From Nageia nagi (taxonomy: Eukaryota; Plantae; Pinophyta): a stretch of 64,000 nt of DNA. A model generated the notes under the pieces. The model saw nothing but the letters and a program-made list of their open reading frames with translations. It was not told where the DNA came from and did no database searches. The translations under genes and the position numbers were made by a program. The stretch lies in contig JBITNC010000001.1 of the NCBI GenBank assembly GCA_050084985.1, forward strand, positions 43,152,001 to 43,216,000, in the 5' to 3' direction. Of the stretch, positions 27,996 through 58,907 are shown piece after piece; within the stretch, counting starts at the first letter, position 1, and each line of letters starts with the position of its first letter.

Positions 27996-28035
27996 GAAAT
28001 TTATAACCATGCCTTACAAAGACTAAATACATGTG
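27996..28035 (+). other. Unidentified 40-nt exon-like module (EIYNH/RALQRLNTC)
   Basis: Bounded by CTTTAGCAG| and |GTAATC; open frame; present in all units. Confidence 0.45.
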
Positions 28036-28811: not shown

Positions 28812-28967
28812 GAGTTGCCTTAGCTTTCCTTGATATCAAGAGTTATACTCTAGAGTTCATAGCTTTGCATGGTAGAGCTTTTGCTTACTCATGGTTATGT
28901 GGAAGCCATGTCAACAGTTTCTTATGCATACTATTATGTTCTTGTCCTCAAAGCATATTATGACCAG
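28812..28967 (+). pseudogene. Unidentified ~156-nt exon-like fragment
   Basis: TAG|...CAG|GTAC. Reads ELP*LFLDIKSYTLEFIALHGRAF/..THGYVEAMSTVSYAYYSVLVLKAYYDQ across a frameshift. Source gene not recognised. Confidence 0.55.
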
Positions 28968-28984
28968 GTACAACCCTTGCTTAC

Positions 28985-31566: not shown

Positions 31567-31589
31567 TTTTTAACAACTTATGGCTTAGT

Positions 31590-32045
31590 TCTCATTAATG
31601 CTATAATGTGGACTACTATTTTTGGTAGGCTTGCTTTGTATACATGTGAGACAGTGTTTTGATTTCCTTCAAGTTTTTGCAGGGTTATGGGCTTACAGAT
31701 GAATTGCTTGCACATGGTGATCACGGATGAATTACTTGCACACTCCTTTTCCAATTTGAAGGTGTTGGTGCTCACCATTCTCCACCCATGGCCTAGCTAC
31801 CATTGCTGTCAGGTATGCAATATCTTTCTCTTTTTGTTTATTTGTTTTATCCTTGTTACTGTCTCTGGCTTCTATGTCACTTGTTTTTGCTTGGTTTTGA
31901 GAGTTTTATTGGTGTTGGTTTTAGCAGTTGGTTTTTCCTTTGTCCTTCCTTGTTCATTAGATGTGATAGGAGACTTTACTTCACCATTGCAATATGCTTG
32001 TAGCTGTATGCATAATCCCATCTTAACTACAGTGATTTGAATATT
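31590..32045 (+). repeat. Internal fragment of unit A, A0-like haplotype
   Basis: Keeps the 10-bp TGTTTTTGCT and other A0 states that are absent from array units. Confidence 0.85.
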
Positions 32046-33361
32046 TGGTGTTGGTTTTAGTAGTTGGTTTTTCCTTTGTCCTTCCTTGTTCATTAGATGT
32101 GATAGGAGACTTTACTTCACCGTTGCAATATGCTCGTAGCTGTATGCATAATCCCATCTTAACTCACAGTGATTTGAATATTTGTGTAATATTTTTTTGG
32201 TATGAGAAAAATACTTTTGATATGTTTAAAGAAATTACGAAACATATCAAATGATTAAACAAAAAGAAGTATCATAGAATGCACAGAATTCATGCTTTAG
32301 CAGGAAATTTATAACCGTGCCTTACAAAGACTAAATACATGTGGTAATCAGTAGATATTATCGACACACCAAAGAGAGCAAAAAAAATTAGCCCAACATA
32401 GTAGATAATAACAATACCCCACAAAATAAATGTGGTAATCAGTAGGGATTATCGAGACAACATAGTAGATAATAACAATATCCCACAACATTATGTAAGA
32501 CTGGGCTGGTTTAGCAATAAGCTATATGTAAAGAAGGAAAGATCCACTAGAAGATGCCAGAGAACCAATCGAATGAAAATAGAGGGACTATGGGCAAGTA
32601 TACCAGTAAACAGTTGGAATCTTTCTTCATAAAGATGATTTTAATAATTAATATCACAATTTTCAAATTCACATATTTTTAAATTCAGTTGCAAACTGTT
32701 GTGCTGGTTAGGTTGTCCTGGAAGACTTGCATCACCATATATCGAATTCTTTTTTACGTTTGTTTGTTTTTGCCTAACTAGTTTAGCTTTATCTTCTAGT
32801 TTCTAATGCTCTTGTTGGGCTTGTACAATGTTTGTAACCAACTAGTTTTCTATTTCCTCTTTGACTAATTTTATTTATCATTGTTCTTTGACTTTTTCAC
32901 TATCTTCATAAAAATAGTTAAGAAAAGAGGAAGTCCTCTTTTGTTTAAGTGATTTGTTTAGAATTCTTTTTCTTTTATAAGGAAAGATTTTAAATTGAAA
33001 ATCTGGTTTCCCTGTGTTGTTGGCTCCATACTTATTTTTCATTCGTGTCGTATCCATCTTTTGTCTCTTAAGATGTTGTACTTTTATTAAATGATTTTTT
33101 ACTACAATAACTAGGAGTTGCCTTAGCTCTTCCTTGATATCAAGAGTTATACTCTAGAGTTCATAGCTTTGCATGGTAGAGCTTTTGCTTACTCATGGTT
33201 ATGTGGAAGCCATGTCAACAGTTTCTTATGCATACTATTCTGTTCTTGTCCTCAAAGCATATTATGACCAGGTGCAACCCTTGCTTACATGGAGATAGGA
33301 AATCCCAAAATCGAATATTACGAATGAGTGGAAACGTATCACAAAAGCCTTATAGCTGTAA

Positions 33362-33451
33362 TAACCGTTTGAGTATCCGTTGGAGCCTGAGCCTTACGAG
33401 GAATGATCAGACACGTGTCACAAAAGCCTTACAGGTGTAATAGCCGTTAGA
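33362..33451. promoter_or_regulatory. MSA-like (AACGG) cluster plus palindromic G-box, once per unit
   Basis: Minus strand TCAAACGGTTA (33362-72), TCCAACGGATA (33374-84) and TCTAACGGCTA (33441-51; exact YCYAACGGYYA); GACACGTGTC at 33410-19. Function untested. Confidence 0.5.
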
Positions 33452-36400
33452 GTATCCAAAAAAGAGTGCATTGGATCTTGAGCCATTTGTTCTCCCTCTC
33501 GTTGCTTTAAAGGATAATACGGTAAAGCTTCAATATTGGAGGCTATTTTGTTTTTTGGGCTGATGGATTCAAGTTTTGAGTAGGTATGGGCGAGAGAAAT
33601 AGAATTAAATCATAGTGATGGGGTTCAAATCTGAATTGTAGATGTAGATGAAGAGAAGGAAAAGGGAGGTAGTATAATGGGGGAGAAGAGGAAGAGCTCA
33701 TGTTGGAGTTCACTTCATGTTAGCAGACTCTTGTTTCGACGGCCAACGGACACAATCCTGTTGATTATGGTTTAACCTCTTTGATAGAAGAGGAAGAGGA
33801 AGAGGTCAAGATAGAAATTGTGAGCAGATATGATTTGATTTGAGTTCTTTGCGGTCTATTTATGTGTGGAGGGGTGCCTCTCAACAAGATGTCCATTGAA
33901 GAGTTTATGTCTCTCTTCCCCAACATCTCATTAATGCAGGTAATGTGGACTGCCATTTTTGGTAGGCTTGCTTTGTATACATGTGAGATGGTGTTTTGAT
34001 TTCCTTCAGGTTTTTGCAGGGTTATGGGCTTACAGATGAATTGCTTGCGCATGGTGATTACAGATGAATTATTTGTGCACTCCTTTTCCAATTTGAAGGT
34101 GATGGTGCTCACCATTCTCCAGCCATGGCCTAGCCACCATTGCTACCAGGTATGCAATATCTTTCTCTTTTTGTTTATTTGTTTTGTCCTTGTTACTTGT
34201 CTCTGGCTTCCGTGTCACTTGGTTTTGAGAGTTTTATTAGTGTTGGTTTTAGTAGTTGGTTTTTCCTTTGTCCTTCCTTGTTCATTAGATGTGATAGGAG
34301 ACTTTACTTCACCGTTGCAATATGCTCGTAGCTATATGCATAATCCCATCTTAACTCACAGTGATTTGAATATTTGTGTAATATTTTTTTGGTATGAGAA
34401 AAATACTTTTGATATGTTTAAAGAAATTAGAAACATATCAAATGATTAAACAAAAAGAAGTATCATAGATTGCACAGAATTCATGCTTTAGCAGGAAATT
34501 TATAACCGTGCCTTACAAAGACTAAATACATGTGGTAATCAGTAGATATTATCGACACACCAAAGAGAGCATAAAAAACTAGCTCAACATAGTAGATAAT
34601 AACAATACCCCACCAAATAAATGTGGTAATCAGTAGGGATTATCGAGACAACATAGTAGATAATAACAATATCCCACAACATTATGTAAGACTGGGCTGG
34701 TTTAGCAATAAGCTATATGTAAAGAAGGAAAGATCCACTAGAAGATGCCAGAGAACCAATCGAATGAAAATAGAGGGACTATGGGCAAGTATACCAGTAA
34801 ACAGTTGGAAACTTTCTTCATAAAGATGATTTTAATAATTAATATCACAATTTTCAAATTCACATATTTTTAAATTCAGTTGAAATTTGCAAACTGTTGT
34901 GCTGGTTAGGTTGTCCTAGAAGACTTGCATCACCATATTATCGAATTCTTTTTTACGTTTGTTTGTTTTTGCCTAACTAGTTTAGCTTTATCTTCTAGTT
35001 TCTAATGCTCTTGTTGGGCTTGTACAATGTTTGTAACCAACTAATTTTTTATTTCCTCTTTGACTAATTTTATTTATCATTGTTCTTTGACTTTTTCACT
35101 ATCTTCATAAAAATAGTTAAGAAAAGAGGAAGTCCTCTTTTGTTTAAGTGATTTGTTTAGAATTCTTTTTCTTTTATAAGGAAAGATTTTAAATTGAAAA
35201 ATCTGGTTTCCCTGTGTTGTTGGCTCCATACTTATTTTTCATTTGTGTCGTATCCATCTTTTGTCTCTTAAGATGTTGTACTTTTATTAAATGATTTTTA
35301 CTACAAAACTAGGAGTTGCCTTAGCTCTTCCTTGATGTCAAGAGTTATACTCTAGAGTTCATAGCTTTGCATGGTAGAGCTTTTGCTTACTCATGGTCAT
35401 GTGGAAGCCATGTCAACAGTTTCTTATGCATACTATTCTGTTCTTGTCCTCAAAGCATATTATGACCAGGTCAACCCTTGCTTACATGGAGATAGGAAAT
35501 CCCAAAATCAAATATTACGAATGAGTGGAAACGTATCACAAAAGCCTTACAGCTGTAATAACCGTTTGAGTATCTGTTGGAGCCTGAGCCTTACGAGGAA
35601 TGATCAGACACGTGTCACAAAAGCCTTACAGGTGTAATAGCCGTTAGAGTATCCAAAAAAGAGTGCATTGGAGCTTGAGCCATTTGTTCTCCCTCTCGTT
35701 GCTTTAAAGGATAATACGGTAAAGCTTCAATATTGGAGGCTATTTTGTTTTTTGGGCTGATGGATTCAAGTTTTGAGTAGTATGGGCGAGAGAAATAGAA
35801 TTAAATCATAGTGATGGGGTTCAAATCTGAATTGTAGATGTAGATGAAGAGAAGGAAAAGGGAGGTAGTATAATGGGGGAGAAGAGGAAGAGCTCATGTT
35901 GGAGTTCACTCATGTTAGCAGACTCTTGTTTCGACGGCCAACGGACACAATCCTGTTGATTATGGTTTAACCTCTTTGATAGAAGAGGAAGAGGAAGAGG
36001 TCAAGATAGAAATTGTGAGCAGATATGATTTGATTTGAGTTCTTTGCGGTCTATTTATGTGTGGAGGGGTGCCTCTCAACAAGATGTCCATTGAAGAGTT
36101 TATGTCTCTCTTCCCCAACATCTCATTAATGCAGGTAATGTGGACTGCCATTTTTGGTAGGCTTGCTTTGTATACATGTGAGATGGTGTTTTGATTTCCT
36201 TCAGGTTTTTGCAGGGTTATGGGCTTACAGATGAATTGCTTGCGCATGGTGATTACGGATGAATTATTTGTGCACTCCTTTTCCAATTTGAAGGTGATGG
36301 TGCTCACCATTCTCCAGCCATGGCCTAGCCACCATTGCTACCAGGTATGCAATATCTTTCTCTTTTTGTTTATTTGTTTTGTCCTTGTTACTTGTCTCTG

Positions 36401-39400
36401 GCTTCCGTGTCACTTGGTTTTGAGAGTTTTATTAGTGTTGGTTTTAGCAGTTGGTTTATTCCTTTATCCTTCCTTGTTCATTAGATGTGATAGGAGACTT
36501 TACTTCACCGTTGCAATATGCTCGTAGCTATATGCATAATCCCATCTTAACTCACAGTGATTTGAATATTTGTGTAATATTTTTTTGGGATGAGAAAAAT
36601 ACTTTTGATATGTTTAAAGAAATTATGAAACATATCAAATGATTAAACAAAAAGAAGTATCATAGATTGCACAGAATTCATGCTTTAGCAGGAAATTTAT
36701 AACCATGCCTTACAAAGACTAAATACATGTGGTAATCAGTAGATATTATCGACACACCAAAGAGAGCAAAAAAAACTAGCTCAACATAGTAGATAATAAC
36801 AATACCCCACCAAATAAATGTGGTAATCAGTAGGGATTATCGAGACAACATAGTAGATAATAACAATATCCCACAACATTATGTAAGACTGGGCTGGTTT
36901 AGCAATAACTATATGTAAAGAAGGAAAGATCCACTAGAAGATGCCAGAGAACCAATCGAATGAAAATAGAGGGACTATGGGCAAGTATACCAGTAAACAG
37001 TTGGAAACTTTCTTCATAAAGATGATTTTAATAATTAATATCACAATTTTCAAATTCACATATTTTTAAATTTCAGTTGTGCAAACTGTTGTGCTGGTTA
37101 GGTTGTCCTGGAAGACTTGCATCACCATATTATCGAATTCTTTTTTACGTTTGTTTGTTTTTGCCTAACTAGTTTAGCTTTATCTTCTAGTTTCTAATGC
37201 TCTTGTTGGGCTTGTACAATGTTTGTAACCAACTAATTTTTTATTTCCTCTTTGACTAATTTTATTTATCATTGTTCTTTGACTTTTTCACTATCTTCAT
37301 AAAAATAGTTAAGAAAAGAGGAAGTCCTCTTTTGTTTAAGTGATTTGTTTAGAATTCTTTTTCTTTTATAAGGAAAGATTTTAAATTGAAAATCTGGTTT
37401 CCCTGTGTTGTTGGCTCCATACTTATTTTTCATTCGTGTCGTATCCATCTTTTGTCTCTTAAGATGTTGTACTTTTATTAAATGATTTCTTACTACAATA
37501 ACTAGGAGTTGCCTTAGCTCTTCCTTGATGTCAAGAGTTATACTCTAGAGTTCATAGCTTTGCATGGTAGAGCTTTTGCTTACTCATGGTTATGTGGAAG
37601 CCATGTCAACAGTTTCTTATGCATACTATTCTGTTCTTGTCCTCAAAGCATATTATGACCAGGTGCAACCCTTGCTTACATGGAGATAGGAAATCCCAAA
37701 ATCGAATATTACGAATGAGTGGAAACGTATCACAAAAGCCTTACAGCTGTAATAACCGTTTGAGTATCCGTTGGAGCCTGAGCCTTACGAGGAATGATCA
37801 GACACGTGTCACAAAAGCCTTACAGGTGTAATAGCTGTTAGAGTATCCAAAAAAGAGTGCATTGGAGCTTGAGCCATTTGTTCTCCCTCTCGTTGCTTTA
37901 AAGGATAATACGGTAAAGCTTCAATATTGGAGGCCATTTTGTTTTTTGGGCTGATGGATTCAAGTTTTGAGTAGGTATGGGCGAGAGAAATAGAATTAAA
38001 TCATAGTGATGGGGTTCAAATCTGAATTGTAGATGTAGATGAAGAGAAGGAAAAGGGAGGTAGTATAATGGGGGAGAAGAGGAAGAGCTCATGTTGGAGT
38101 TCACGTCATGTTAGCAGACTCCTGTTTCGACGGCCAACGGACACAATCCTGTTGATTATGGTTTAACCTCTTTGATAGAAGAGGAAGAGGAAGAGGTCAA
38201 GATAGAAATTGTGAGCAGATATGATTTGATTTGAGTTCTTTGCAGTCTATTTATGTGTGGAGGGGTGCCTCTCAACAAGATGTCCATTGAAGAGTTTATG
38301 TCTCTCTTCCCCAACATCTCATTAATGCAGGTAATGTGGACTGCCATTTTTGGTAGGCTTGCTTTGTATACATGTGAGATGGTGTTTTGATTTCCTTCAG
38401 GTTTTTGCAGGGTTATGGGCTTACAGATGAATTGCTTGCGCATGGTGATTACGGATGAATTATTTGTGCACTCCTTTTCCAATTTGAAGGTGATGGTGCT
38501 CACCATTCTCCAGCCATGGCCTAGCCACCATTGCTACCAGGTATGCAATATCTTTCTCTTTTTGTTTATTTGTTTTGTCCTTGTTACTTGTCTCTGGCTT
38601 CCGTGTCACTTGGTTTTGAGAGTTTTATTAGTGTTGGTTTTAGAAGTTGGTTATTCCTTTATCCTTCCTTGTTCATTAGATGTGATAGGAGACTTTACTT
38701 CACCGTTGCAATATGCTCGTAGCTATATGCATAATCCCATCTTAACTCACAGTGATTTGAATATTTGTGTAATATTTTTTTGGTATGAGAAAAATACTTT
38801 TGATATGTTTAAAGAAATTATGAAACATATCAAATGATTAAACAAAAAGAAGTATCATAGATTGCACAGAATTCATGCTTTAGCAGGAAATTTATAACCG
38901 TGCCTTACAAAGACTAAATACATGTGGTAATCAGTAGATATTATCGACACACCAAAGAGAGCAAAAAAAACTAGCTCAACATAGTAGATAATAACAATAC
39001 CCCACCAAATAAATGTGGTAATCAGTAGGGATTATCGAGACAACATAGTAGATAATAACAATATCCCACAACATTATGTAAGACTGGGCTGGTTTAGCAA
39101 TAAGCTATATGTAAAGAAGGAAAGATCCACTAGAAGATGCCAGAGAACCAATCGAATGAAAATAGAGGGACTATGGGCAAGTATACCAGTAAACAGTTGG
39201 AATCTTTCTTCATAAAGATGATTTTAATAATTAATATCACAATTTTCAAATTCACATATTTTTAAATTCAGTTGCAAACTGTTGTGCTGGTTAGGTTGTC
39301 CTGGAAGACTTGCATCACCATATTATCGAATTCTTTTTTACGTTTGTTTGTTTTTGCCTAACTAGTTTAGCTTTATCTTCTAGTTTCTAATGCTCTTGTT

Positions 39401-42400
39401 GGGCTTGTACAATGTTTGTAACCAACTAGTTTTTTATTTCCTCTTTGACTAATTTTATTTATCATTGTTCTTTGACTTTTTCACTATCTTCATAAAAATA
39501 GTTAAGAAAGAGAAGTCCTCTTTTGTTTAAGTGATTTGTTTAGAATTCTTTTTCTTTTATAAGGAAAGATTTTAAATTGAAAATCTGGTTTCCCTGTGTT
39601 GTTGGCTCCATACTTATTTTTCATTCGTGTCGTATCCATCTTTTGTCTCTTAAGATGTTGTACTTTTATTAAATGATTTCTTACTACAATAACTAGGAGT
39701 TGCCTTAGCTCTTCCTTGATATCAAGAGTTATACTCTAGAGTTCATAGCTTTGCATGGTAGAGCTTTTGCTTACTCATGGTTATGTGGAAGCCATGTCAA
39801 CAGTTTCTTATGCATACTATTCTGTTCTTGTCCTCAAAGCATATTATGACCAGGTGCAACCCTTGCTTACATGGAGATAGGAAATCCCAAAATAGAATAT
39901 TACGAATGAGTGGAAACGTATCACAAAAGCCTTACAGCTGTAATAACCGTTTGAGTATCCGTTGGAGCCTGAGCCTTACGAGGAATGATCAGACACGTGT
40001 CACAAAAGCCTTACAGGTGTAATAGCCGTTAGAGTATCCAAAAAAGAGTGCATTGGAGCTTGAGCCATTTGTTCTCCCTCTCGTTGCTTTAAAGGATAAT
40101 ACGGTAAAGCTTCAATATTGGAGGCTATTTTGTTTTTTGGGCTGATGGATTCAAGTTTTGAGTAGGTATGGGCGAGAGAAATAGAATTAAATCATAGTGA
40201 TGGGGTTCAAATCTGAATTGTAGATGTAGATGAAGAGAAGGAAAAGGGAGGTAGTATAATGGGGGAGAAGAGGAAGAGCTCATGTTGGAGTTCACTTCAT
40301 GTTAGCAGACTCTTGTTTCGACGGCCAACGGACACAATCCTGTTGATTATGGTTTAACCTCTTTGATAGAAGAGGAAGAGGAAGAGGTCAAGATAGAAAT
40401 TGTGAGCAGATATGATTTGATTTGAGTTCTTTGCGGTCTATTTATGTGTGGAGGGGTGCCTCTCAACAAGATGTCCATTGAAGAGTTTATGTCTCTCTTC
40501 CCCAACATCTCATTAATGCAGGTAATGTGGACTGCCATTTTTGGTAGGCTTGCTTTGTATACATGTGAGATGGTGTTTTGATTTCCTTCAGGTTTTTGCA
40601 GGGTTATGGGCTTACAGATGAATTGCTTGCGCATGGTGATTACGGATGAATTATTTGTGCACTCCTTTTCCAATTTGAAGGTGATGGTGCTCACCATTCT
40701 CCAGCCATGGCCTAGCCACCATTGCTACCAGGTATGCAATATCTTTCTCTTTTGGTTTATTTGTTTTGTCCTTGTTACTTGTCTTTGGCTTCCGTGTCAC
40801 TTGGTTTTGAGAGTTTTATTAGTGTTGGTTTTAGTAGTTGGTTTTTCCTTTGTCCTTCCTTGTTCATTAGATGTGATAGGAGACTTTACTTCACCGTTGC
40901 AATATGCTCGTAGCTATATGCATAATCCCATCTTAACTCACAGTGATTTGAATATTTGTGTAATATTTTTTTGGTATGAGAAAAATACTTTTGATATGTT
41001 TAAAGAAATTACGAAACATATCAAATGATTAAACAAAAAGAAGTATCATAGATTGCACAGAATTCATGCTTTAGCAGGAAATTTATAACCGTGCCTTACA
41101 AAGACTAAATACATGTGGTAATCAGTAGATATTATCGACACAACAAAGAGAGCAAAAAAAACTAGCTCAACATAGTAGATAATAACAATACCCCACCAAA
41201 TAAATGTGGTAATCAGTAGGGATTATCGAGACAACATAGTAGATAATAACAATATCCCACAACATTATGTAAGACTGGGCTGGTTTAGCAATAAGCTATA
41301 TGTAAAGAAGGAAAGATCCACTAGAAGATGCCAGAGAACCAATCGAATGAAAATAGAGGGACTATGGGCAAGTATACCAGTAAACAGTTGGAAACTTTCT
41401 TCATAAAGATGATTTTAATAATTAATATCACAATTTTCAAATTCACATATTTTTAAATTCAGTTGAAATTTGCAAACTGTTGTGCTGGTTAGGTTGTCCT
41501 GGAAGACTTGCATCACCATATTATCGAATTCTTTTTTACGTTTGTTTGTTTTTGCCTAACTAGTTTAGCTTTATCTTCTAGTTTCTAATGCTCTTGTTGG
41601 GCTTGTACAATGTTTGTAACCAACTAATTTTTTATTTCCTCTTTGACTAATTTTATTTATCATTGTTCTTTGACTTTTTCACTATCTTCATAAAAATAGT
41701 TAAGAAAAGAGGAAGTCCTCTTTTGTTTAAGTGATTTGTTTAGAATTCTTTTTCTTTTATAAGGAAAGATTTTAAATTGAAAATCTGGTTTCCCTGTGTT
41801 GTTGGCTCCATACTTATTTTTCATTCGTGTCGTATCCATCTTTTGTCTCTTAAGATGTTGTACTTTTATTAAATGATTTCTTACTACAATAACTAGGAGT
41901 TGCCTTAGCTCTTCCTTGATATCAAGAGTTATACTCTAGAGTTCATAGCTTTGCATGGTAGAGCTTTTGCTTACTCATGGTTATGTGGAAGCCATGTCAA
42001 CAGTTTCTTATGCATACTATTCTGTTCTTGTCCTCAAAGCATATTATGACCAGGTGCAACCCTTGCTTACATGGAGATAGGAAATCCCAAAATCGAATAT
42101 TACGAATGAGTGGAAACGTATCACAAAAGCCTTACAACTGTAATAACCGTTTGAGTATCCGTTGGAGCCTGAGCCTTACGAGGAATGATCAGACACGTGT
42201 CACAAAAGCCTTACAGGTGTAATAGCCGTTAGAGTATCCAAAAAAGAGTGCATTGGAGCTTGAGCCATTTGTTCTCCCTCTCGTTGCTTTAAAGGATAAT
42301 ACGGTAAAGCTTCAATATTGGAGGCTATTTTGTTTTTTGGGCTGATGGATTCAAGTTTTGAGTAGGTATGGGCGAGAGAAATAGAATTAAATCATAGTGA

Positions 42401-45400
42401 TGGGGTTCAAATCTGAATTGTAGATGTAGATGAAGAGAAGGAAAAGGGAGGTAGTATAATGGGGGAGAAGAGGAAGAGCTCATGTTGGAGTTCACTTCAT
42501 GTTAGCAGACTCTTGTTTCGACGGCCAACGGACACAATCCTGTTGATTATGGTTTAACCTCTTTGATAGAAGAGGAAGAGGAAGAGGTCAAGATAGAAAT
42601 TGTGAGCAGATATGATTTGATTTGAGTTCTTTGCGGTCTATTTATGTGTGGAGGGGTGCCTCTCAACAAGATGTCCATTGAAGAGTTTATGTCTCTCTTC
42701 CCCAACATCTCATTAATGCAGGTAATGTGGATTACCATTTTTGGTAGGCTTGCTTTGTATACATGTGAGATGGTGTTTTGATTTCCTTCAGGTTTTTGCA
42801 GGGTTATGGGCTGACAGATGAATTGCTTGCGCATGGTGATTACGGATGAATTATTTGTGCACTCCTTTTCCAATTTGAAGGTGATGGTGCTCACCATTCT
42901 CCAGCCATGGCCTAGCCACCATTGCTACCAGGTATGCAATATCTTTCTCTTTTTGTTTATTTGTTTTGTCCTTGTTACTTGTCTCTGGCTTCCGTGTCAC
43001 TTGGTTTTGAGAGTTTTATTAGTGTTGGTTTTAGTAGTTGGTTTTTCCTTTGTCCTTCCTTGTTCATTAGATGTGATAGGAGACTTTACTTCACCGTTGC
43101 AATATGCTCGTAGCTATATGCATAATCCCATCTTAACTCACAGTGATTTGAATATTTGTGTAATATTTTTTTGGTATGAGAAAAATACTTTTGATATGTT
43201 TAAAGAAATTAGGAAACATATCAAATGATTAAACAAAAAGAAGTATCATAGATTGCACAGAATTCATGCTTTAGCAGGAAATTTATAACCGTGCCTTACA
43301 AAGACTAAATACATGTGGTAATCAGTAGATATTATCGACACACCAAAGAGAGCATAAAAAACTAGCTCAACATAGTAGATAATAACAATACCCCACCAAA
43401 TAAATGTGGTAATCAGTAGGGATTATCGAGACAACATAGTAGATAATAACAATATCCCACAACATTATGTAAGACTGGGCTGGTTTAGCAATAAGCTATA
43501 TGTAAAGAAGGAAAGATCCACTAGAAGATGCCAGAGAACCAATCGAATGAAAATAGAGGGACTATGGGCAAGTATACCAGTAAACAGTTGGAAACTTTCT
43601 TCATAAAGATGATTTTAATAATTAATATCACAATTTTCAAATTCACATATTTTTAAATTCAGTTGAAATTTACAAACTGTTGTGCTGGTTAGGTTGTCCT
43701 GGAAGACTTGCATCACCATATTATCGAATTCTTTTTTACGTTTGTTTGTTTTTGCCTAACTAGTTTAGCTTTATCTTCTAGTTTCTAATGCTCTTGTTGG
43801 GCTTGTACAATGTTTGTAACCAACTAATTTTTTATTTCCTCTTTGACTAATTTTATTTATCATTGTTCTTTGACTTTTTCACTATCTTCATAAAAATAGT
43901 TAAGAAAAGAGGAAGTCCTCTTTTGTTTAAGTGATTTGTTTAGAATTCTTTTCTTTTATAAGGAAAGATTTTAAATTGAAAATCTGGTTTCCCTGTGTTG
44001 TTGGCTCCATACTTATTTTTCATTCGTGTCGTATCCATCTTTTGTCTCTTAAGATGTTGTACTTTTATTAAATGATTTCTTACTACAATAACTAGGAGTT
44101 GCCTTAGCTCTTCCTTGATATCAAGAGTTATACTCTAGAGTTCATAGCTTTGCATGGTAGAGCTTTTGCTTACTCATGGTTATGTGGAAGCCATGTCAAC
44201 AGTTTCTTATGCATACTATTCTGTTCTTGTCCTCAAAGCATATTATGACCAGGTGCAACCCTTGCTTACATGGAGATAGGAAATCCCAAAATCGAATATT
44301 ACGAATGAGTGGAAACGTATCACAAAAGCCTTACAGCTGTAATAACCGTTTGAGTATCCGTTGGAGCCTGAGCCTTACGAGGAATGATCAGACACGTGTC
44401 ACAAAAGCCTTACAGGTGTAATAGCTGTTAGAGTATCCAAAAAAGAGTGCATTGGAGCTTGAGCCATTTGTTCTCCCTCTCGTTGCTTTAAAGGATAATA
44501 CGGTAAAGCTTCAATATTGGAGGCTATTTTGTTTTTTGGGCTGATGGATTCAAGTTTTGAGTAGGTATGGGCGAGAGAAATAGAATTAAATCATAGTGAT
44601 GGGGTTCAAATCTGAATTGTAGATGTAGATGAAGAGAAGGAAAAGGGAGGTAGTATAATGGGGGAGAAGAGGAAGAGCTCATGTTGGAGTTCACTTCATG
44701 TTAGCAGACTCTTGTTTCGACGGCCAACGGACACAATCCTGTTGATTATGGTTTAACCTCTTTGATAGAAGAGGAAGAGGAAGAGGTCAAGATAGAAATT
44801 GTGAGCAGATATGATTTGATTTGAGTTCTTTGCGGTCTATTTATGTGTGGAGGGGTGCCTCTCAACAAGATGTCCATTGAAGAGTTTATGTCTCTCTTCC
44901 CCAACATCTCATTAATGCAGGTAATGTGGATTACCATTTTTGGTAGGCTTGCTTTGTATACATGTGAGATGGTGTTTTGATTTCCTTCAGGTTTTTGCAG
45001 GGTTATGGGCTGACAGATGAATTGCTTGCGCATGGTGATTACGGATGAATTATTTGTGCACTCCTTTTCCAATTTGAAGGTGATGGTGCTCACCATTCTC
45101 CAGCCATGGCCTAGCCACCATTGCTACCAGGTATGCAATATCTTTCTCTTTTTGTTTATTTGTTTTGTCCTTGTTACTTGTCTCTGGCTTCCGTGTCACT
45201 TGGTTTTGAGAGTTTTATTAGTGTTGGTTTTAGTAGTTGGTTTTTCCTTTGTCCTTCCTTGTTCATTAGATGTGATAGGAGACTTTACTTCACCGTTGCA
45301 ATATGCTCGTAGCTATATGCATAATCCCATCTTAACTCACAGTGATTTGAATATTTGTGTAATATTTTTTTGGTATGAGAAAAATACTTTTGATATGTTT

Positions 45401-48400
45401 AAAGAAATTAGGAAACATATCAAATGATTAAACAAAAAGAAGTATCATAGATTGCACAGAATTCATGCTTTAGCAGGAAATTTATAACCGTGCCTTACAA
45501 AGACTAAATACATGTGGTAATCAGTAGATATTATCGACACACCAAAGAGAGCATAAAAAACTAGCTCAACATAGTAGATAATAACAATACCCCACCAAAT
45601 AAATGTGGTAATCAGTAGGGATTATCGAGACAACATAGTAGATAATAACAATATCCCACAACATTATGTAAGACTGGGCTGGTTTAGCAATAAGCTATAT
45701 GTAAAGAAGGAAAGATCCACTAGAAGATGCCAGAGAACCAATCGAATGAAAATAGAGGGACTATGGGCAAGTATACCAGTAAACAGTTGGAAACTTTCTT
45801 CATAAAGATGATTTTAATAATTAATATCACAATTTTCAAATTCACATATTTTTAAATTCAGTTGCAAACTGTTGTGCTGGTTAGGTTGTCCTGGAAGACT
45901 TGCATCACCATATTATCGAATTCTTTTTTACGTTTGTTTGTTTTTGCCTAACTAGTTTAGCTTTATCTTCTAGTTTCTAATGCTCTTGTTGGGCTTGTAC
46001 AATGTTTGTAACCAACTAATTTTTTATTTCCTCTTTGACTAATTTTATTTATCATTGTTCTTTGACTTTTTCACTATCTTCATAAAAATAGTTAAGAAAA
46101 GAGGAAGTCCTCTTTTGTTTAAGTGATTTGTTTAGAATTCTTTTCTTTTATAAGGAAAGATTTTAAATTGAAAATCTGGTTTCCCTGTGTTGTTGGCTCC
46201 ATACTTATTTTTCATTCGTGTCGTATCCATCTTTTGTCTCTTAAGATGTTGTACTTTTATTAAATGATTTCTTACTACAATAACTAGGAGTTGCCTTAGC
46301 TCTTCCTTGATATCAAGAGTTATACTCTAGAGTTCATAGCTTTGCATGGTAGAGCTTTTGCTTACTCATGGTTATGTGGAAGCCATGTCAACAGTTTCTT
46401 ATGCATACTATTCTGTTCTTGTCCTCAAAGCATATTATGACCAGGTGCAACCCTTGCTTACATGGAGATAGGAAATCCCAAAATCGAATATTACGAATGA
46501 GTGGAAACGTATCACAAAAGCCTTACAGCTGTAATAACCGTTTGAGTATCCGTTGGAGCCTGAGCCTTACGAGGAATGATCAGACACATGTCACAAAAGC
46601 CTTACAGGTGTAATAGCCGTTAGAGTATCCAAAAAAGAGTGCATTGGAGCTTGAGCCATTTGTTCTCCCTCTCGTTGCTTTAAAGGATAATACGGTAAAG
46701 CTTCAATATTGGAGGCTATTTTGTTTTTTGGGCTGATGGATTCAAGTTTTGAGTAGGTATGGGCGAGAGAAATAGAATTAAATCATAGTGATGGGGTTCA
46801 AATCTGAATTGTAGATGTAGATGAAGAGAAGGAAAAGGGAGGTAGTATAATGGGGGAGAAGAGGAAGAGCTCATGTTGGAGTTCACTTCATGTTAGCAGA
46901 CTCTTGTTTCGATGGCCAACGGACACAATCCTGTTGATTATGGTTTAACCTCTTTGATAGAAGAGGAAGAGGAAGAGGTCAAGATAGAAATTGTGAGCAG
47001 ATATGATTTGATTTGAGTTCTTTGCGGTCTATTTATGTGTGGAGGGGTGCCTCTCAACAAGATGTCCATTGAAGAGTTTATGTCTCTCTTCCCCAACATC
47101 TCATTAATGCAGGTAATGTGGACTGCCATTTTTGGTAGGCTTGCTTTGTATACATGTGAGATGGTGTTTTGATTTCCTTCAGGTTTTTGCAGGGTTATGG
47201 GCTTACAGATGAATTGCTTGCGCATGGTGATTACGGATGAATTATTTGTGCACTCCTTTTCCAATTTGAAGGTGATGGTGCTCACCATTCTCCAGCCATG
47301 GCCTAGCCACCATTGCTACCAGGTATGCAATATCTTTCTCTTTTGGTTTATTTGTTTTGTCCTTGTTACTTGTCTTTGGCTTCCGTGTCACTTGGTTTTG
47401 AGAGTTTTATTAGTGTTGGTTTTAGTAGTTGGTTTTTCCTTTGTCCTTCCTTGTTCATTAGATGTGATAGGAGACTTTACTTCACCGTTGCAATATGCTC
47501 GTAGCTATATGCATAATCCCATCTTAACTCACAGTGATTTGAATATTTGTGTAATATTTTTTTGGTATGAGAAAAATACTTTTGATATGTTTAAAGAAAT
47601 TACGAAACATATCAAATGATTAAACAAAAAGAAGTATCATAGATTGCACAGAATTCATGCTTTAGCAGGAAATTTATAACCGTGCCTTACAAAGACTAAA
47701 TACATGTGGTAATCAGTAGATATTATCGACACACCAAAGAGAGCAAAAAAAACTAGCTCAACATAGTAGATAATAACAATACCCCACCAAATAAATGTGG
47801 TAATCAGTAGGGATTATCGAGACAACATAGTAGATAATAACAATATCCCACAACATTATGTAAGACTGGGCTGGTTTAGCAATAAGCTATATGTAAAGAA
47901 GGAAAGATCCACTAGAAGATGCCAGAGAACCAATCGAATGAAAATAGAGGGACTATGGGCAAGTATACCAGTAAACAGTTGGAAACTTTCTTCATAAAGA
48001 TGATTTTAATAATTAATATCACAATTTTCAAATTCACATATTTTTAAATTCAGTTGAAATTTGCAAACTGTTGTGCTAGTTAGGTTGTCCTGGAAGACTT
48101 GCATCACCATATTATCGAATTCTTTTTTACGTTTGTTTGTTTTTGCCTAACTAGTTTAGCTTTATCTTCTAGTTTCTAATGCTCTTGTTGGGCTTGTACA
48201 ATGTTTGTAACCAACTAATTTTTTTTCCTCTTTGACTAATTTTATTTATCATTGTTCTTTGACTTTTTCACTATCTTCATAAAAATAGTTAAGAAAAGAG
48301 GAAGTCCTCTTTTGTTTAAGTGATTTGTTTAGAATTCTTTTTCTTTTATAAGGAAAGATTTTAAATTGAAAATCTGGTTTCCCTGTGTTGTTGGCTCCAT

Positions 48401-51400
48401 ACTTATTTTTCATTCGTGTCGTATCCATCTTTTGTCTCTTAAGATGTTGTACTTTTATTAAATGATTTCTTACTACAATAACTAGGAGTTGCCTTAGCTC
48501 TTCCTTGATATCAAGAGTTATACTCTAGAGTTCATAGCTTTGCATGGTAGAGCTTTTGCTTACTCATGGTTATGTGGAAGCCATGTCAACAGTTTCTTAT
48601 CCATACTATTCTGTTCTTGTCCTCAAAGCATATTATGACCAGGTGCAACCCTTGCTTACATGGAGATAGGAAATCCCAAAATCGAATATTACGAATGAGT
48701 GGAAACGTATCACAAAAGCCTTACAGCTGTAATAACCGTTTGAGTATCCGTTGGAGCCTGAGCCTTACGAGGAATGATTAGACACGTGTCACAAAAGCCT
48801 TACAGGTGTAATAGCCGTTAGAGTATCCAAAAAAGAGTGCATTGGAGCTTGAGCCATTTGTTCTCCCTCTCGTTGCTTTAAAGGATAATACGATAAAGCT
48901 TCAATATTGGAGGCTATTTTGTTTTTGGGCTGATGGATTCATGTTTTGAGTAGGTATGGGTGAGAGAAATAGAATTAAATCATAGTGATGGGGTTCAAAT
49001 CTGAATTGTAGATGTAGATGAAGAGAAGGAAAAGGGAGGTAGTATAATGGGGGAGAAGAGGAAGAGCTCATGTTGGAGTTCACTTCATGTTAGCAGACTC
49101 TTGTTTCGACGGCCAACGGACACAATCCTGTTGATTATGGTTTAACCTCTTTGATAGAAGAGGAAGAGGAAGAGGTCAAGATAGAAATTGTGAGCAGATA
49201 TGATTTGATTTGAGTTCTTTGCGGTCTATTTATGTGTGGAGGGGTGCCTCTCAACAAGATGTCCATTGAAGAGTTTATGTCTCTCTTCCCCAACATCTCA
49301 TTAATGCAGGTAATGTGGACTGCCATTTTTGGTAGGCTTGCTTTGTATACATGTGAGATGGTGTTTTGATTTCCTTCAAGTTTTTGCAGGGTTATGGGCT
49401 GACAGATGAATTGCTTGCGCATGGTGATTACGGATGAATTATTTGTCCACTCCTTTTCCAATTTGAAGGTGATGGTGCTCACCATTCTCCAGCCATGGCC
49501 TAGCCACCATTGCTACCAGGTATGCAATATCTTTCTCTTTTTGTTTATTTGTTTTGTCCTTGTTACTTGTCTCTGGCTTCCGTGTCACTTGGTTTTGAGA
49601 GTTTTATTAGTGTTGGTTTTAGTAGTTGGTTTTTCCTTTGTCCTTCCTTGTTCATTAGATGTGATAGGAGACTTTACTTCACCGTTGCAATATGCTCGTA
49701 GCTATATGCATAATCCCATCTTAACTCACAGTGATTTGAATATTTGTGTAATATTTTTTTGGTATGAGAAAAATACTTTTGATATGTTTAAAGAAATTAC
49801 GAAACATATCAAATGATTAAACAAAAAGAAGTATCATAGATTGCACAGAATTCATGCTTTAGCAGGAAATTTATAACCGTGCCTTACAAAGACTAAATAC
49901 ATGTGGTAATCAGTAGATATTATCGACACACCAAAGAGAGCAAAAAAAACTAGCTCAACATAGTAGATAATAACAATACCCCACCAAATAAATGTGGTAA
50001 TCAGTAGGGATTATCGAGACAACATAGTAGATAATAACAATATCCCACAACATTATGGAAGACTGGGCTGGTTTAGCAATAAGCTATATGTAAAGAAGGA
50101 AAGATCCACTAGAAGATGCCAGAGAACCAATCGAATGAAAATAGAGGGACTATGGGCAAGTATACCAGTAAACAGTTGGAAAATTTCTTCATAAAGATGA
50201 TTTTAATAATTAATATCACAATTTTCAAATTCACATATTTTTAAATTCAGTTGAAATTTGCAAACTGTTGTGCTAGTTAGGTTGTCCTGGAAGACTTGCA
50301 TCACCATATTATCGAATTCTTTTTTACGTTTGTTTGTTTTTGCCTAACTAGTTTAGCTTTATCTTCTAGTTTCTAATGATCTTGTTGGGCTTGTACAATG
50401 TTTGTAACCAACTAATTTTTTATTTCCTCTTTGACTAATTTTATTTATCATTGTTCTTTGACTTTTTCACTATCTTCATAAAAATAGTTAAGAAAAGAGG
50501 AAGTCCTCTTTTGTTTAAGTGATTTGTTTAGAATTCTTTTTCTTTTATAAGGAAAGATTTTAAATTGAAAATCTGGTTTCCCTGTGTTGTTGGCTCCATA
50601 CTTATTTTTCATTCGTGTCGTATCCATCTTTTGTCTCTTAAGATGTTGTACTTTTATTAAATGATTTCTTACTACAATAACTAGGAGTTGCCTTAGCTCT
50701 TCCTTGATATCAAGAGTTATACTCTAGAGTTCATAGCTTTGCATGGTAGAGCTTTTGCTTACTCATGGTTATGTGGAAGCCATGTCAACAGTTTCTTATG
50801 CATACTATTCTGTTCTTGTCCTCAAAGCATATTATGACCAGGTGCAACCCTTGCTTACATGGAGATAGGAAATCCCAAAATCAAATATTACGAATGAGTG
50901 GAAACGTATCACAAAAGCCTTACAGCTGTAATAACCGTTTGAGTATCTGTTGGAGCCTGAGCCTTACGAGGAATGATCAGACACGTGTCACAAAAGCCTT
51001 ACAGGTGTAATAGCCGTTAGAGTATCCAAAAAAGAGTGCATTGGAGCTTGAGCCATTTGTTCTCCCTCTCGTTGCTTTAAAGGATAATACGGTAAAGCTT
51101 CAATATTGGAGGCTATTTTGTTTTTTGGGCTGATGGATTCAAGTTTTGAGTAGCTATGGGCGAGAGAAATAGAATTAAATCATAGTGATGGGGTTCAAAT
51201 CTGAATTGTAGATGTAGATGAAGAGAAGGAAAAGGGAGGTAGTATAATGGGGGAGAAGAGGAAGAGCTCATGTTGGAGTTCACTTCATGTTAGCAGACTC
51301 TTGTTTCGACGGCCAACGGACACAATCCTGTTGATTATGGTTTAACCTCTTTGATAGAAGAGGAAGAGGAAGAGGTCAAGATAGAAATTGTGAGCAGATA

Positions 51401-53320
51401 TGATTTGATTTGAGTTCTTTGCGGTCTATTTATGTGTGGAGGGGTGCCTCTCAACAAGATGTCCATTGAAGAGTTTATGTCTCTCTTCCCCAACATCTCA
51501 TTAATACAGGTAATGTGGACTGCCATTTTTGGTAGGCTTGCTTTGTATACATGTGAGATGGTGTTTTGATTTCCTTCAGGTTTTTGCAGGGTTATGGGCT
51601 TACAGATGAATTGCTTGCGCATGGTGATTACGGATGAATTATTTGTGCACTCCTTTTCCAATTTGAAGGTGATGGTGCTCACCATTCTCCAGCCATGGCC
51701 TAGCCACCATTGCTACCAGGTATGCAATATCTTTCTCTTTTTGTTTATTTGTTTTGTCCTTGTTACTTGTCTCTGGCTTCCGTGTCACTTGGTTTTGAGA
51801 GTTTTATTAGTGTTGGTTTTAGCAGTTGGTTTTTCCTTTGTCCTTCCTTGTTCATTAGATGTGATAGGAGACTTTACTTCACCGTTGCAATATGCTCGTA
51901 GCTGTATGCATAATCCCATCTTAACTCACAGTGATTTGAATATTTGTGTAATATTTTTTTGGTATGAGAAAAATACTTTTGATATGTTTAAAGAAATTAT
52001 GAAACATATCAAATGATTAAACAAAAAGAAGTATCATAGATTGCACAGAATTCATGCTTTAGCAGGAAATTTATAACCATGCCTTACAAAGACTAAATAC
52101 ATGTGGTAATCAGTAGATATTATCGACACACAAAGAGAGCAAAAAAAACTAGCTCAACATAGTAGATAATAACAATACCCCACCAAATAAATGTGGTAAT
52201 CAGTAGGGATTATCGAGACAACATAGTAGATAATAACAATATCCCACAACATTATGTAAGACTGGGCTGGTTTAGCAATAACCTATATGTAAAGAAGGAA
52301 AGATCCACTAGAAGATGCCAGAGAACCAATCGAATGAAAATAGAGGGACTATGGGCAAGTATACCAGTAAACAGTTGGAAACTTTCTTCATAAAGATGAT
52401 TTTAATAATTAATATCACAATTTTCAAATTCACATATTTTTAAATTTAGTTGAAATTTGCAAACTGTTGTGCTGGTTAGGTTGTCCTGGAAGACTTGCAT
52501 CACCATATTATCGAATTCGTTTTTACGTTTGTTTGTTTTTGCCTAACTAGTTTAGCTTTATCTTCTAGTTTCTAATGCTCTTGTTGGGCTTGTACAATGT
52601 TTGTAACCAACTAATTTTTTATTTCCTCTTTGACTAATTTTATTTATCATTGTTCTTTGACTTTTTCACCATCTTCATAAAAATAGTTAAGAAAAGAGGA
52701 AGTCCTCTTTTGTTTAAGTGATTTGTTTAGAATTCTTTTTCTTTTATAAGGAAAGATTTTAAATTGAAAATCTGGTTTCCCTGTGTTGTTGGCTCCATAC
52801 TTATTTTTCATTTGTGTCATATCCATCTTTTGTCTCTTAAGATGTTGTACTTTTATTAAATGATTTTTTACTACAATAACTAGGAGTTGCCTTAGCTCTT
52901 CCTTGATATCAAGAGTTATACTCTAGAGTTCATAGCTTTGCATGGTAGAGCTTTTGCTTACTCATGGTTATGTGGAAGCCATGTCAACAGTTTCTTATGC
53001 ATACTATTCTGTTCTTTTCCTCAAAGCATATTATGACCAGGTACCACCCTTGCTTACATGGAGATAGGAAATCCCAAAATCGAATATTACGAATGAGTGG
53101 AAACGTATCACAAAAGCCTTACAGCTGTAATAACCGTTTGAGTATCCGTTGGAGCCTGAGCCTTACGAGGAATGATCAGACACGTGTCACAAAAGCCTTA
53201 CAGGTGTAATAGCCGTTAGAGTATCCAAAAAAGAGTGCATTGGAGCTTGAGCCATTTGTTCTCCCTCTCGTTGCTTTAAAGGATAATACGGTAAAGCTTC
53301 AATATTGGAGGCTATTTTGT

Positions 53321-53793
53321 TTTTTGGGCTGATGGATTCAAGTTTTGAGTAGCTATGGGCGAGAGAAATAGAATTAAATCATAGTGATGGGGTTCAAATC
53401 TGAATTGTAGATGTAGATGAAGAGAAGGAAAAGGGAGGTAGTATAATGGGGGAGAAGAGGAAGAGCTCATGTTGGAGTTCACTTCATGTTAGCAGACTCT
53501 TGTTTCGACGGCCAACGGACACAATCCTGTTGATTATGGTTTAACCTCTTTGATAGAATTTTTGGGCTGATGGATTCAAGTTTTGAGTAGCTATGGGAGA
53601 GAAATAGAATTAAATCATAGTGATGGGGTTCAATCTGAATTGTAGATGTAGATGAAGAGAAGGAAAAGGGAGGTAGTATAATGGGGGAGAAGAGGAAGAG
53701 CTCATGTTGGAGTTCACTTCATGTTAGCAGACTCTTGTTTCGACGGCCAACGGACACAATCCTGTTGATTATGGTTTAACCTCTTTGATAGAA
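53321..53793 (+). repeat. ~238-bp internal tandem duplication in the last unit
   Basis: 53321-53558 repeated from 53559 with small deletions. Confidence 0.85.
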
Positions 53794-55486
53794 GAGGAAG
53801 AGGAAGAGGTCAAGATAGAAATTGTGAGCAGATATGATTTGATTTGAGTTCTTTGCGGTCTATTTATGTGTGGAGGGGTGCCTCTCAACAAGATGTCCAT
53901 TGAAGAGTTTATGTCTCTTCCCCAACATCTCATTAATGCAGGTAATGTGGACTGCCATTTTTGTAGGCTTGCTTTGTATACATGTGAGATGGTGTTTTGA
54001 TTTCCTTCAGGTTTTTGCAGGGTTATGGGCTTACAGATGAATTGCTTGCGCATGGTGATTACGGATGAATTATTTGTGCACTCCTTTTCAATTTGAAGGT
54101 GATGGTGCTCACCATTCTCCAGCCATGGCCTAGCCACCATTGCTACCAGGTATGCAATATCTTTCTCTTTTTGTTTATTTGTTTTGTCCTTGTTACTTGT
54201 CTCTGGCTTCCGTGTCACTTGGTTTTGAGAGTTTTATTAGTGTTGGTTTTAGTAGTTGGTTTTTCCTTTGTCCTTCCTTGTTCATTAGATGTGATAGGAG
54301 ACTTTACTTCACCGTTGCAATATGCTCGTAGCTGTATGCATAATCCCATCTTAACTCACAGTGATTTGAATATTTGTGTAATATTTTTTTGGTATGAGAA
54401 AAATACTTTTGATATGTTTAAAGAAATTATGAAACATATCAAATGATTAAACAAAAAGAAGTATCATAGATTGCACAGAATTCATGCTTTAGCAGGAAAT
54501 TTATAACCGTGCCTTACAAAGACTAAATACATGTGGTAATCAGTAGATATTATCGAACACCAAAGAGAGCAAAAAAAACTAGCTCAACATAGTAGATAAT
54601 AACAATACCCCACCAAATAAATGTGGTAATCAGTAGGGATTATCGAGACAACATAGTAGATAATAACAATATCCCACAACATTATGTAAGACTAGGCTGG
54701 TTTAGCAATAACCTATATGTAAAGAAGGAAAGATCCACTAGAAGATGCCAGAGAACCAATCGAATGAAAATAGAGGGACTATGGGCAAGTATACCAGTAA
54801 ACAGTTGGAAACTTTCTTCATAAAGATGATTTTAATAATTAATATCACAATTTTCAAATTCACATATTTTTAAATTTAGTTGAAATTTGCAAACTGTTGT
54901 GCTGGTTAGGTTGTCCTGGAAGACTTGCATCACCATATTATCGAATTCGTTTTTACGTTTGTTTGTTTTTGCCTAACTAGTTTAGCTTTATCTTCTAGTT
55001 TCTAATGCTCTTGTTGGGCTTGTACAATGTTTGTAACCAACTAATTTTTTATTTCCTCTTTGACTAATTTTATTTATCATTGTTCTTTGACTTTTTCACT
55101 ATCTTCATAAAAATAGTTAAGAAAAGAGGAAGTCCTCTTTTGTTTAAGTGATTTGTTTAGAATTCTTTTTCTTTTATAAGGAAAGATTTTAAATTGAAAA
55201 TCTGGTTTCCCTGTGTTGTTGGCTCCATACTTATTTTTCATTTGTGTCGTATCCATCTTTTGTCTCTTAAGATGTTGTACTTTTATTAAATGATTTTTTA
55301 CTACAATAACTAGGAGTTGCCTTAGCTCTTCCTTGATATCAAGAGTTATACTCTAGAGTTCATAGCTTTGCATGGTAGAGCTTTTGCTTACTCATGGTTA
55401 TGTGGAAGCCATGTCATAGTTTCTTATGCATACTATTCTGTTCTTGTCCTCAAAGCATATTATGACCAGGTACAACCCTTGCTTAC

Positions 55487-58035: not shown

Positions 58036-58800
58036 TTGTTGGTATCCAAAGCTTTTTGAAGATGAATCTTTGTATTAATCTCCTCTTGATCCCTTCTTCC
58101 TCCTAAATCTTGATCAAGAAGCATAGTCCTTGTTGCTTTCCAAGATTTAGATGACTATGTACACCCACTCTAGACTTCTTCCATCAATTCTGAAACCCTT
58201 AGGTTTAGGATATTATTTTGTGACACGAGTGTGTGGCATTCTTCTTCCTTTCTTTCAATTTATTTTTGATATTTTATCACCTACGTATTTTCTTCACTCA
58301 GCTGTGAGACTTTTGCAGGGTTTTTATTAGTGTATTCTCTTAGCTTATTAATAACTCTATCCTTTCTGCCCTCAATCTAGACATTACTATTTCATATTGT
58401 CCAGTAATAGTATAGAGATGAATTGGTGTAATTCTTTTCAGAAGATAATAAAATCTCGTTCTCATATTGCAACGCTTCTACTACAATATTTATTTGGGCA
58501 TAATTTATGATAAATACTTATAGTAGACTTTGCCGAAGCTTTTACTCCCAAGCGAAGAAAGCATGATGCTATCAACCCTGTAAGAGATAGCATGGATATT
58601 AGTTGATTTTAATATTTTGTTTTATTAGTAGTCTAAACAATGTCTCTAATGGTCTCATAGATGCCAGGATAGAAAATAGACTTTTGACTCTTTGGTGAAA
58701 TTTTGTAATTATTCTGCATTTGAAACTCCCTCTTTGTAGAACGTGATATATGCATTTAGAAATATTTGTTGTGTACTCTTTCTAAAATTGCTTTCCCTGT

Positions 58801-58907
58801 TATAACTCCCTTGGTAGTATTCGCTGCTCTCGTGGCTCTCTCTGACACATGGGGGAATGAACAGATGGAGGAGGATGAAGAAAGCCTAGCAAGAATGACC
58901 TAATAAG
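58801..58907 (+). other. Unidentified decayed exon-like island
   Basis: YNSLGSIRCSRGSL*HMGE*TDGGG*RKPSKNDLIR|GTACGT. All three stops are TGA (compatible with CGA deamination); GC-richer than flanks. Confidence 0.45.

Follow-up and report, generated by a model that had tools for sequence, protein, structure and literature searches.

How a tandem array of kilobase-sized units carrying pieces of host genes arises in a plant genome, and whether it has any function once it has arisen, is the question raised by a locus of the conifer Nageia nagi. The locus was studied in a stretch of 64,000 nucleotides of contig JBITNC010000001.1 (assembly GCA_050084985.1, positions 43,152,001 to 43,216,000 of the forward strand). 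This whole stretch is referred to as the window, and all coordinates below are window positions. An earlier note had described here a recent macrosatellite made of a promoter and captured host-gene fragments, and had suggested that it could be a regulatory RNA source or an epiallele, or could equally be neutral. The reading favored by the present analysis, with a probability of roughly 0.6, is that the 5' module of a spliced, non-coding chimeric pseudogene has undergone a lineage-specific amplification in tandem. This module comprises upstream DNA, two decayed pieces of exons and a splice donor that is still live. The array would encode no protein and would at most supply a dozen identical donor-bearing first-exon copies to one non-coding transcript.

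The array and the older duplication around it

BLAST of the unit against the window, exact motif search and gapless repeat families showed that positions 32045-55486 are a head-to-tail array of 10.56 units over 23,442 bp. The predicted array of about ten near-identical units was thus confirmed by BLAST and by motif search. A leading partial unit (32045-33288, plus strand), which corresponds to 27737-28984 of an older single unit, copy A, and is 98.8-99% identical to the other units, is followed by ten full units, U1 to U10 (33289-55486, plus strand). The full units start at 33289, 35486, 37680, 39871, 42071, 44270, 46462, 48660, 50859 and 53058, with 55486 as the last position of the array. 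Their length is 2191-2200 bp, except for U10, which measures 2429 bp because of a 235-bp internal tandem duplication (53321-53793, plus strand) present in this unit only. All ten unit joints were found to be identical by exact motif search, with CTTGCTTAC at the end of one unit running directly into ATGGAGATAGGAAAT at the start of the next. Having a kilobase-sized unit, head-to-tail order, several copies and defined identical joints, the array is a macrosatellite.

The units differ pairwise by 3-29 substitutions, with a mean of 16.9 (0.77%) and 0.14% for the closest pair, which bears out the description of the array as recent. There are 56 substitution events among the units; 35 are singletons and the remainder are common to particular subsets of units. 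Length differences specific to single units are also present. The combination of unit-specific and partly shared variants with unit-specific indels argues for a real array rather than one over-expanded during assembly. The similarity between units is partly mirror-like, with 3 differences between U5 and U6, 6 between U4 and U7 and 11 between U9 and U10, while U2 and U9 share 3 variants. This is not expected from simple block duplication; it could stem from gene conversion or from several unequal exchanges. Near its start, each unit also has a 57-bp direct repeat (in U5, 42104-42160 and 42183-42239), the second copy of which has a G-box-like or abscisic acid-responsive element-like motif, ACACGTGTC. 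This repeat may be what had been taken for a candidate promoter, and the region is covered by contigs, guessed to be RNA, from a relative.

Around the array lies an older duplication of about 4.75 kb (26789-31565 vs. 53058-58037, 93-95.6% identical). Each copy of this duplication consists of one unit, made up of parts a and b, followed by a flank. The upstream copy begins with copy A (26789-28984, plus strand), an older single unit in its original upstream context, with an AMP-binding-like piece at 27336-27428 and a chimeric exon whose donor lies between 27639 and 27640. The flank that follows, F (28985-31565), comprises a 1.1-kb spacer and a 441-bp sequence repeated three times in tandem (30118-31441), and is 93-95.6% identical to the second flank, F' (55487-58037). 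The latter likewise has the spacer and the threefold 441-bp repeat (56587-57913) and runs on into unique downstream DNA. In both flanks the tandem repeats are built from subrepeats of about 154 bp. Between F and the array lie a filler of 24 nt (31566-31589, plus strand) and an older truncated unit piece of 462 bp, fragment u' (31590-32051, plus strand), which corresponds to 27418-27879 of copy A. Nothing else in the window resembles this complex of units and flanks.

Copy A differs from each array unit by about 100 substitutions (4.6-5%); fixed differences separate the two, and the diversity within the array is low. Fragment u' is 94.9% identical to copy A but only 91% identical to the array units, an indication that u' was not homogenized with the array. 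Over 460 bp, there are 5 changes private to copy A, 14 to u' and 12 to the array, a star-like pattern. The divergence between copy A and the array is uneven, amounting to about 8% in the first 700 bp or so (42071-42770 vs. 26789-27480) and to about 3% in the remainder.

Gene fragments, splicing and methylation

The gene content of the units was examined by searching 24,736 Pfam families and 177,635 PDB sequences, with exons searched separately. The only Pfam match of the open piece VLCGLFMCGGAPLSKKSIEEFMSLFPNVSLM in copy A (27336-27428) was PF00501, the AMP-binding family (E 0.3), over 22 residues at profile positions 291-312, with a score of 10.3 bits against a cut-off of 29.9. The next piece, which follows a short GT...AG interval, opens with QGYGLTDE, and GYGLTDE is the motif that comes next in AMP-binding/4CL-like enzymes. 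A stretch of u', CLHMVITDELLAHSFSNLKVLVLT, had a single PDB match, residues 112-139 of Arabidopsis TIR1 (about 28 residues, E 0.12). After a frameshift, a further 15 residues or so (..FSSHGLATIAT) are presumably colinear with TIR1, judged by eye. Only the versions in copy A and u' gave these matches; the more decayed array versions had none in PDB or Pfam. Unrelated pieces also gave chance matches at E of about 0.1, and the identification of the two families therefore hinges on the predicted family being the only match for each piece. On these grounds the AMP-binding/4CL-like and TIR1-like identities appear specific but statistically weak, and the 4CL-like/TIR1 chimera proposed in the earlier note holds to that extent. 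The "other exons" of the same note found no family support, since they gave only unrelated matches at chance level.

In U5, which may serve as the example, the AMP-binding/4CL-like open piece (42626-42721, plus strand) ends in ..GGVPLNKMSIEEFMSLFPNISLMQ and is followed by GT at 42722. The chimeric exon (42802-42931, plus strand) comes after an acceptor AG at 42800-42801 and ends at a donor, CAG/GT, between 42931 and 42932; the corresponding donor of U10 lies between 54149 and 54150. In this exon GYGLTDE is fused to the TIR1-like RMVITDELFVHSFSNLKVMVL, followed by ..GLATIAT after the frameshift. The reading frames of both gene pieces are broken by stops and frameshifts. Neither an intact TIR1/AFB protein (an F-box and 18 leucine-rich repeats, about 590 residues) nor a full AMP-binding/4CL-like protein (PF00501 above the gathering score) is encoded, and both are fragments rather than genes.

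Wider searches added no relatives. A search for homologous proteins with the 152-residue open reading frame (ORF) of copy A found nothing, a search of the ESM Atlas gave no usable match, and none of six window ORFs was present in a protein collection on exact look-up. Rfam had no family in the region from 26 to 64 kb, and two metagenome scans, one with the unit joint and the other with the 4CL/TIR1 fusion point, were blank. The one match returned by phmmer from 1.84 billion representatives was a repetitive protein of 1347 residues with 28% identity over intron-derived residues only; it was rejected as a repeat-inflated false positive. The ORF said to face the array does exist at 57256-57849 on the minus strand, and open frames continue as far as 58154, but the ORF is an open frame of the threefold 441-bp repeat, with coiled-coil-like frames from the 441/154-bp repeat and no relatives. 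Its Pfam matches, of the coiled-coil type, were all below the cut-offs, and no homologue of the 205-residue repeat ORF was found. Both threefold repeats (30118-31441 and 56587-57913) are open on the minus strand, in a frame of up to 205 residues.

The splice donor was evaluated with public sequencing runs, all of them in the form of assembled contigs, which were compared with window positions 52900-56580. Two of these, X1 and X2, are DNA runs, and two others, X4 and X5, come from two studies of a relative, organism B, and are RNA by guess only. In X4 and X5, contigs follow the chimeric exon as far as 54149, exactly at the CAG/GTATGC donor, and then go on with 58 and 118 letters that do not match. 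The first 30 of these letters have a single site in the window, 58818-58847, with 0-1 mismatch, directly after an AG. This loose end leading from the donor at 54149 to 58818 was absent from X1 and X2 among the loose ends listed. The structure is best read as a GT-AG splice that runs from the unit exon, over what remains of the unit and over F', to a downstream exon of 92 nt (58818-58909, plus strand; AG at 58816-58817, GT at 58910) outside the duplicated block. Such a splice supports the guess that X4 and X5 are RNA. Furthermore, since the donor is joined to an exon beyond the array, the array appears to multiply the 5' module of one transcription unit rather than to be a free-standing element.

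All 12 copies, namely the ten units, copy A and, with 3 changes, u', have the donor that follows the chimeric exon. A donor site in every unit, as described in the earlier note, is supported by the retained GT and by the use of the donor seen in the relative's contigs. Read by eye, the frame does not stay open beyond a few codons from the splice, which indicates a non-coding transcript, and the transcript is probably silenced as well. X4 also holds unspliced contigs. One of its contigs (53037-53232) starts 21 letters before the unit joint, which is below the criterion of 31 letters; it is a hint that the joint exists in organism B and is read through there.

A record of methylation was sought in the changes among units, which were polarized with copy A as the outgroup. 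Twenty of the 24 C:G to T:A changes fall at CG (6) or CHG (14) sites (H being any base other than G), and such sites make up 18% of the C/G positions (binomial p = 6e-12 for the excess). The rates per site were 0.11 for CG, 0.16 for CHG, 0.006 for CHH and 0.0085 for A:T transitions, and the observed/expected ratio of CpG was 0.40. The same CG/CHG bias is found in the older differences between copy A and the array and between F and F'. CHG hypermutability points to germline CG and CHG methylation of the kind found in transposable elements, and the bias is interpreted as the footprint of long-standing germline methylation. Because the older differences share the bias, the methylation would be older than the expansion and gives no support to an epiallele specific to the array. 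It would be the generic repeat or heterochromatin methylation of ordinary plant repeats.

Joints, copy number and the order of events

The joints of the complex fall into three classes. At the joint between the end of one unit and the start of the next (b to a), the sequence upstream of copy A ends in ...ATATAC and the unit in ...GCTTAC, leaving a 3-bp microhomology, TAC; beyond the unit end, copy A and the last unit are both colinear into the flank. Where F meets u', positions 31571-31593, comprising filler and the first bases of u', are identical to a motif of the 154-bp subrepeat about 290 bp away (e.g. 31283-31305). This motif occurs ten times in the window and only inside F and F', and the identity of the filler to a motif so close by marks it as a templated insertion, which overlaps the start of u' by TCTC. 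The joint of u' with the array shows GTGT/TTGGTGT microhomology and an overlap duplication of about 140 bp. Microhomology or a templated insertion, the mark of a complex duplication of this type, was therefore found in all three classes.

The window was also searched for the ends of mobile elements. No inverted repeats were detected from 24 to 64 kb, scans for CACTA pairs and for 12-mer pairs of terminal inverted repeats (TIRs) found none with a target-site duplication above the chance level, and no repeats resembling long terminal repeats (LTRs) flank the complex within the window. There is no retroelement Pfam domain in the unit pieces, and the array does not qualify as one derived from an LTR retrotransposon. 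Helitron-like ends were not found, the unit running from ATGGAG to CTTGCTTAC rather than from TC to CTRR; hairpins were not scanned systematically. The word "captured", taken in the transposon sense, is not supported, as no TIRs, LTRs, CACTA or Helitron-like ends were detected and the joints consist of microhomology or templated filler. The scars are likely to reflect microhomology-mediated template switching or theta-type end-joining, a mechanism reviewed in PMC7407515, and not transposition.

The skeleton of the locus, namely upstream DNA, then a, b and F, the filler, one part of b, another part of b, then a, b and F', then downstream DNA, could go back to one complex duplication that proceeded through a series of backward template switches or through end-joining. 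In the simplest history, three backward switches in one replication or repair event would suffice (31565 to 27418, 27879 to 27737 and 28984 to 26789). Such an event, dating from about 3-5% divergence ago, would yield copy A, F, u', the first b-to-a joint and a direct repeat of 1.6 units together. Much later, this direct repeat would have grown to 10.6 units by unequal crossing-over or replication slippage, along with homogenization. Common plant substitution rates are 7e-9 to 1.3e-8 per site per year, and the coalescence of the array would then lie roughly 0.3-0.55 million years ago and the split between copy A and the array roughly 1.8-3.4 million years ago, both estimates being inflated by methylation-driven mutation.

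The copy number in relatives was approached through contig depth. The summed contig depth of X1 is about 11 for both the unit and the spacer of F'; the copy numbers in the window, 11.6 for the unit and 2 for F, would predict a roughly 6-fold excess of the unit. X1 carries the A-type upstream flank. It is the best-matching public DNA run, with only 54% of the sampled words of the unit present in it. Contig depth, although a weak measure of copy number, suggests that the X1 genome has the unexpanded skeleton and that the expansion is lineage-specific.

X1, X2 and X4 share a joined form that is without 1.06 kb of the unit, with 54342 joined to 52969 (the equivalent of 54343-55400 being absent). 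The joint has an overlap of only TA/TG, and the missing segment is without TIRs. The shorter form is probably a deletion variant, or else the state before an insertion. The segment was considered as an inserted element; this was rejected given the absence of TIRs and the overlap of only TA, and the form was read as a deletion variant.

The rest of the window is AT-rich (GC content 0.27-0.37) and has few long ORFs. Decayed retrotransposon genes, unrelated to the array, lie on the minus strand at 395-4574 and 9227-9616. They include an RVT_3 RNase H domain (395-811, E 2.7e-8) along with pieces resembling reverse transcriptase, gag and copia-type reverse transcriptase. A dispersed repeat family of about 500-650 bp with 74-92% identity occurs at 7096-7600, 15017-15559 and 18400-18934 on the plus strand and, inverted, at 23112-23849 on the minus strand. 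A 186/370-bp tandem repeat (18941-19688) adjoins one of these copies.

Competing explanations and known systems

The possibility was considered that the array is a transposon-borne cassette, in which a Helitron, Pack-MULE or CACTA element took up the AMP-binding/4CL-like and TIR1-like pieces and the array arose through replication of the element, e.g. by rolling-circle read-through of a Helitron, or through its partial amplification. Two unrelated gene pieces are indeed fused in the DNA itself, which still has an intron, and splicing turns them into a chimeric transcript of the type that is a typical product of gene-capturing elements (PMC1947982, PMC5861414, PMC13317346). Moreover, the structural variants of the unit in other genomes, with different 5' flanks and the 1.06-kb deletion form, could mean that there are several dispersed copies. 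However, the scans of the window turned up neither inverted repeats, nor TIR or CACTA pairs above chance, nor LTR-like flanks; the units run from ATGG to TTAC with microhomology or filler at the joints, and copy A is colinear into its flank. The original chimera may stem from an old element that is no longer recognizable, but the array itself needs none, and a transposon-borne origin of the array is considered unlikely. An artefact of assembly, in which a duplication of one or two copies was over-expanded by the assembler, would agree with X1, in which depth is no higher over the unit than over the flank. Artefactual expansion normally gives identical copies, whereas the units here differ in sequence and in length and one has a duplication of its own, and X1 is probably another accession or species. 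An artefact is regarded as the least probable of the explanations.

A functional regulatory repeat would be a copy-number-dependent source of long non-coding RNA or small interfering RNA (siRNA), acting through RNA-directed DNA methylation (RdDM) or in a paramutation-like manner, either on the linked unit or, in trans, on genes of the TIR1/AFB and 4CL-like kinds. Tandem repeats as a class attract RdDM and are able to bring about paramutation (PMC3798267, PMC1618421, PMC11166354). Transcripts of the units appear to be present in a relative, where one contig guessed to be RNA may cross the unit joint, the CG/CHG footprint shows a methylated locus, and copy number appears to differ between genomes. 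On the other hand, the gene-derived stretches are about 30-45 codons each and match only at E 0.1-0.3, and since they are so short and decayed, long perfect matches to functional genes are improbable. Further points against such a function are the lack of inverted repeats or hairpins found in the 24-64 kb region and of Rfam families from 26 kb onward, and a methylation footprint older than the expansion; most plant tandem repeats of this kind are without known effect. A regulatory role is accordingly judged very unlikely. Slightly more doubtful still is the specific form in which a methylated, transcribed and copy-variable array has its read-through or antisense RNA feed RdDM and siRNA, setting a heritable state of the linked unit or silencing TIR1/AFB- and 4CL-like paralogues in trans; if true, this would be a paramutation-like epiallele made of gene fragments. 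The array is most likely selectively neutral, and no function is indicated. The fallback of the earlier note, neutrality, is thus the best fit, the methylation footprint not being specific to the array.

Several points weigh against a tandemly amplified pseudogene module with the history proposed here. The uneven divergence between copy A and the array is unexplained by the single-event model without gene conversion between the two or differences in rate. The order of events is drawn only from joints and divergence, and another order, in which the array came first, the block was then duplicated and the first array collapsed, would fit almost as well. The scans for element ends span the 64-kb window, and a carrier transposon larger than that may exist. 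Contig depth is a poor measure of copy number, and X1 may be another species. The evidence of splicing comes from assembled contigs, guessed to be RNA, of a relative known by a code and not from the source genome. Finally, neutrality is a default assumption.

If the tandem amplification is correctly read, the locus would be a clear example of the way in which, in plants, an array of kilobase-sized units begins and grows. Within 32 kb, it retains the progenitor copy along with the founding junctions, an edge fragment that was not homogenized and the young expanded core, and the unexpanded state seems to persist in a relative. The locus would also indicate that arrays of this kind are able to multiply the live splice donor of a chimeric non-coding transcript and perhaps its promoter as well. 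Should copy number prove to be polymorphic, the locus would provide a natural test of the effect of repeat number alone on methylation, small-RNA output and transcript level.

Pack-MULEs, maize Helitrons and the soybean CACTA element Tgm-Express (PMC1947982, PMC5861414) likewise hold pieces of unrelated host genes in one orientation with a retained intron, spliced into a non-coding chimera. In contrast to these elements, TIRs, target-site duplications and CACTA or Helitron ends were not found in the window, and the amplified copies lie in one place, head to tail, instead of being dispersed. The 853-bp hepta-repeat of maize b1, the distal repeats of pl1 and the Arabidopsis FWA repeats (PMC3798267, PMC11166354, PMC1618421) are similar in being non-coding tandem repeats near a transcription unit, with a copy number that may vary here too and with likely DNA methylation. 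Unlike them, the units of Nageia nagi are 2.2 kb long and contain exon pieces and a splice donor, and the methylation footprint is not array-specific, so that the likeness extends only to being tandem and probably methylated. The closest parallel in origin would be duplications by fork stalling and template switching or microhomology-mediated break-induced replication (FoSTeS/MMBIR), or by polymerase theta end-joining with templated insertions, which unequal crossing-over later expands, although the mechanism at this locus is read from scars in the sequence alone. As in those cases, 3-7 bp of microhomology or a 24-nt filler is present at all three classes of joint. The duplications here are nested and all point backward, and the later expansion would have proceeded by kilobase-scale homology.

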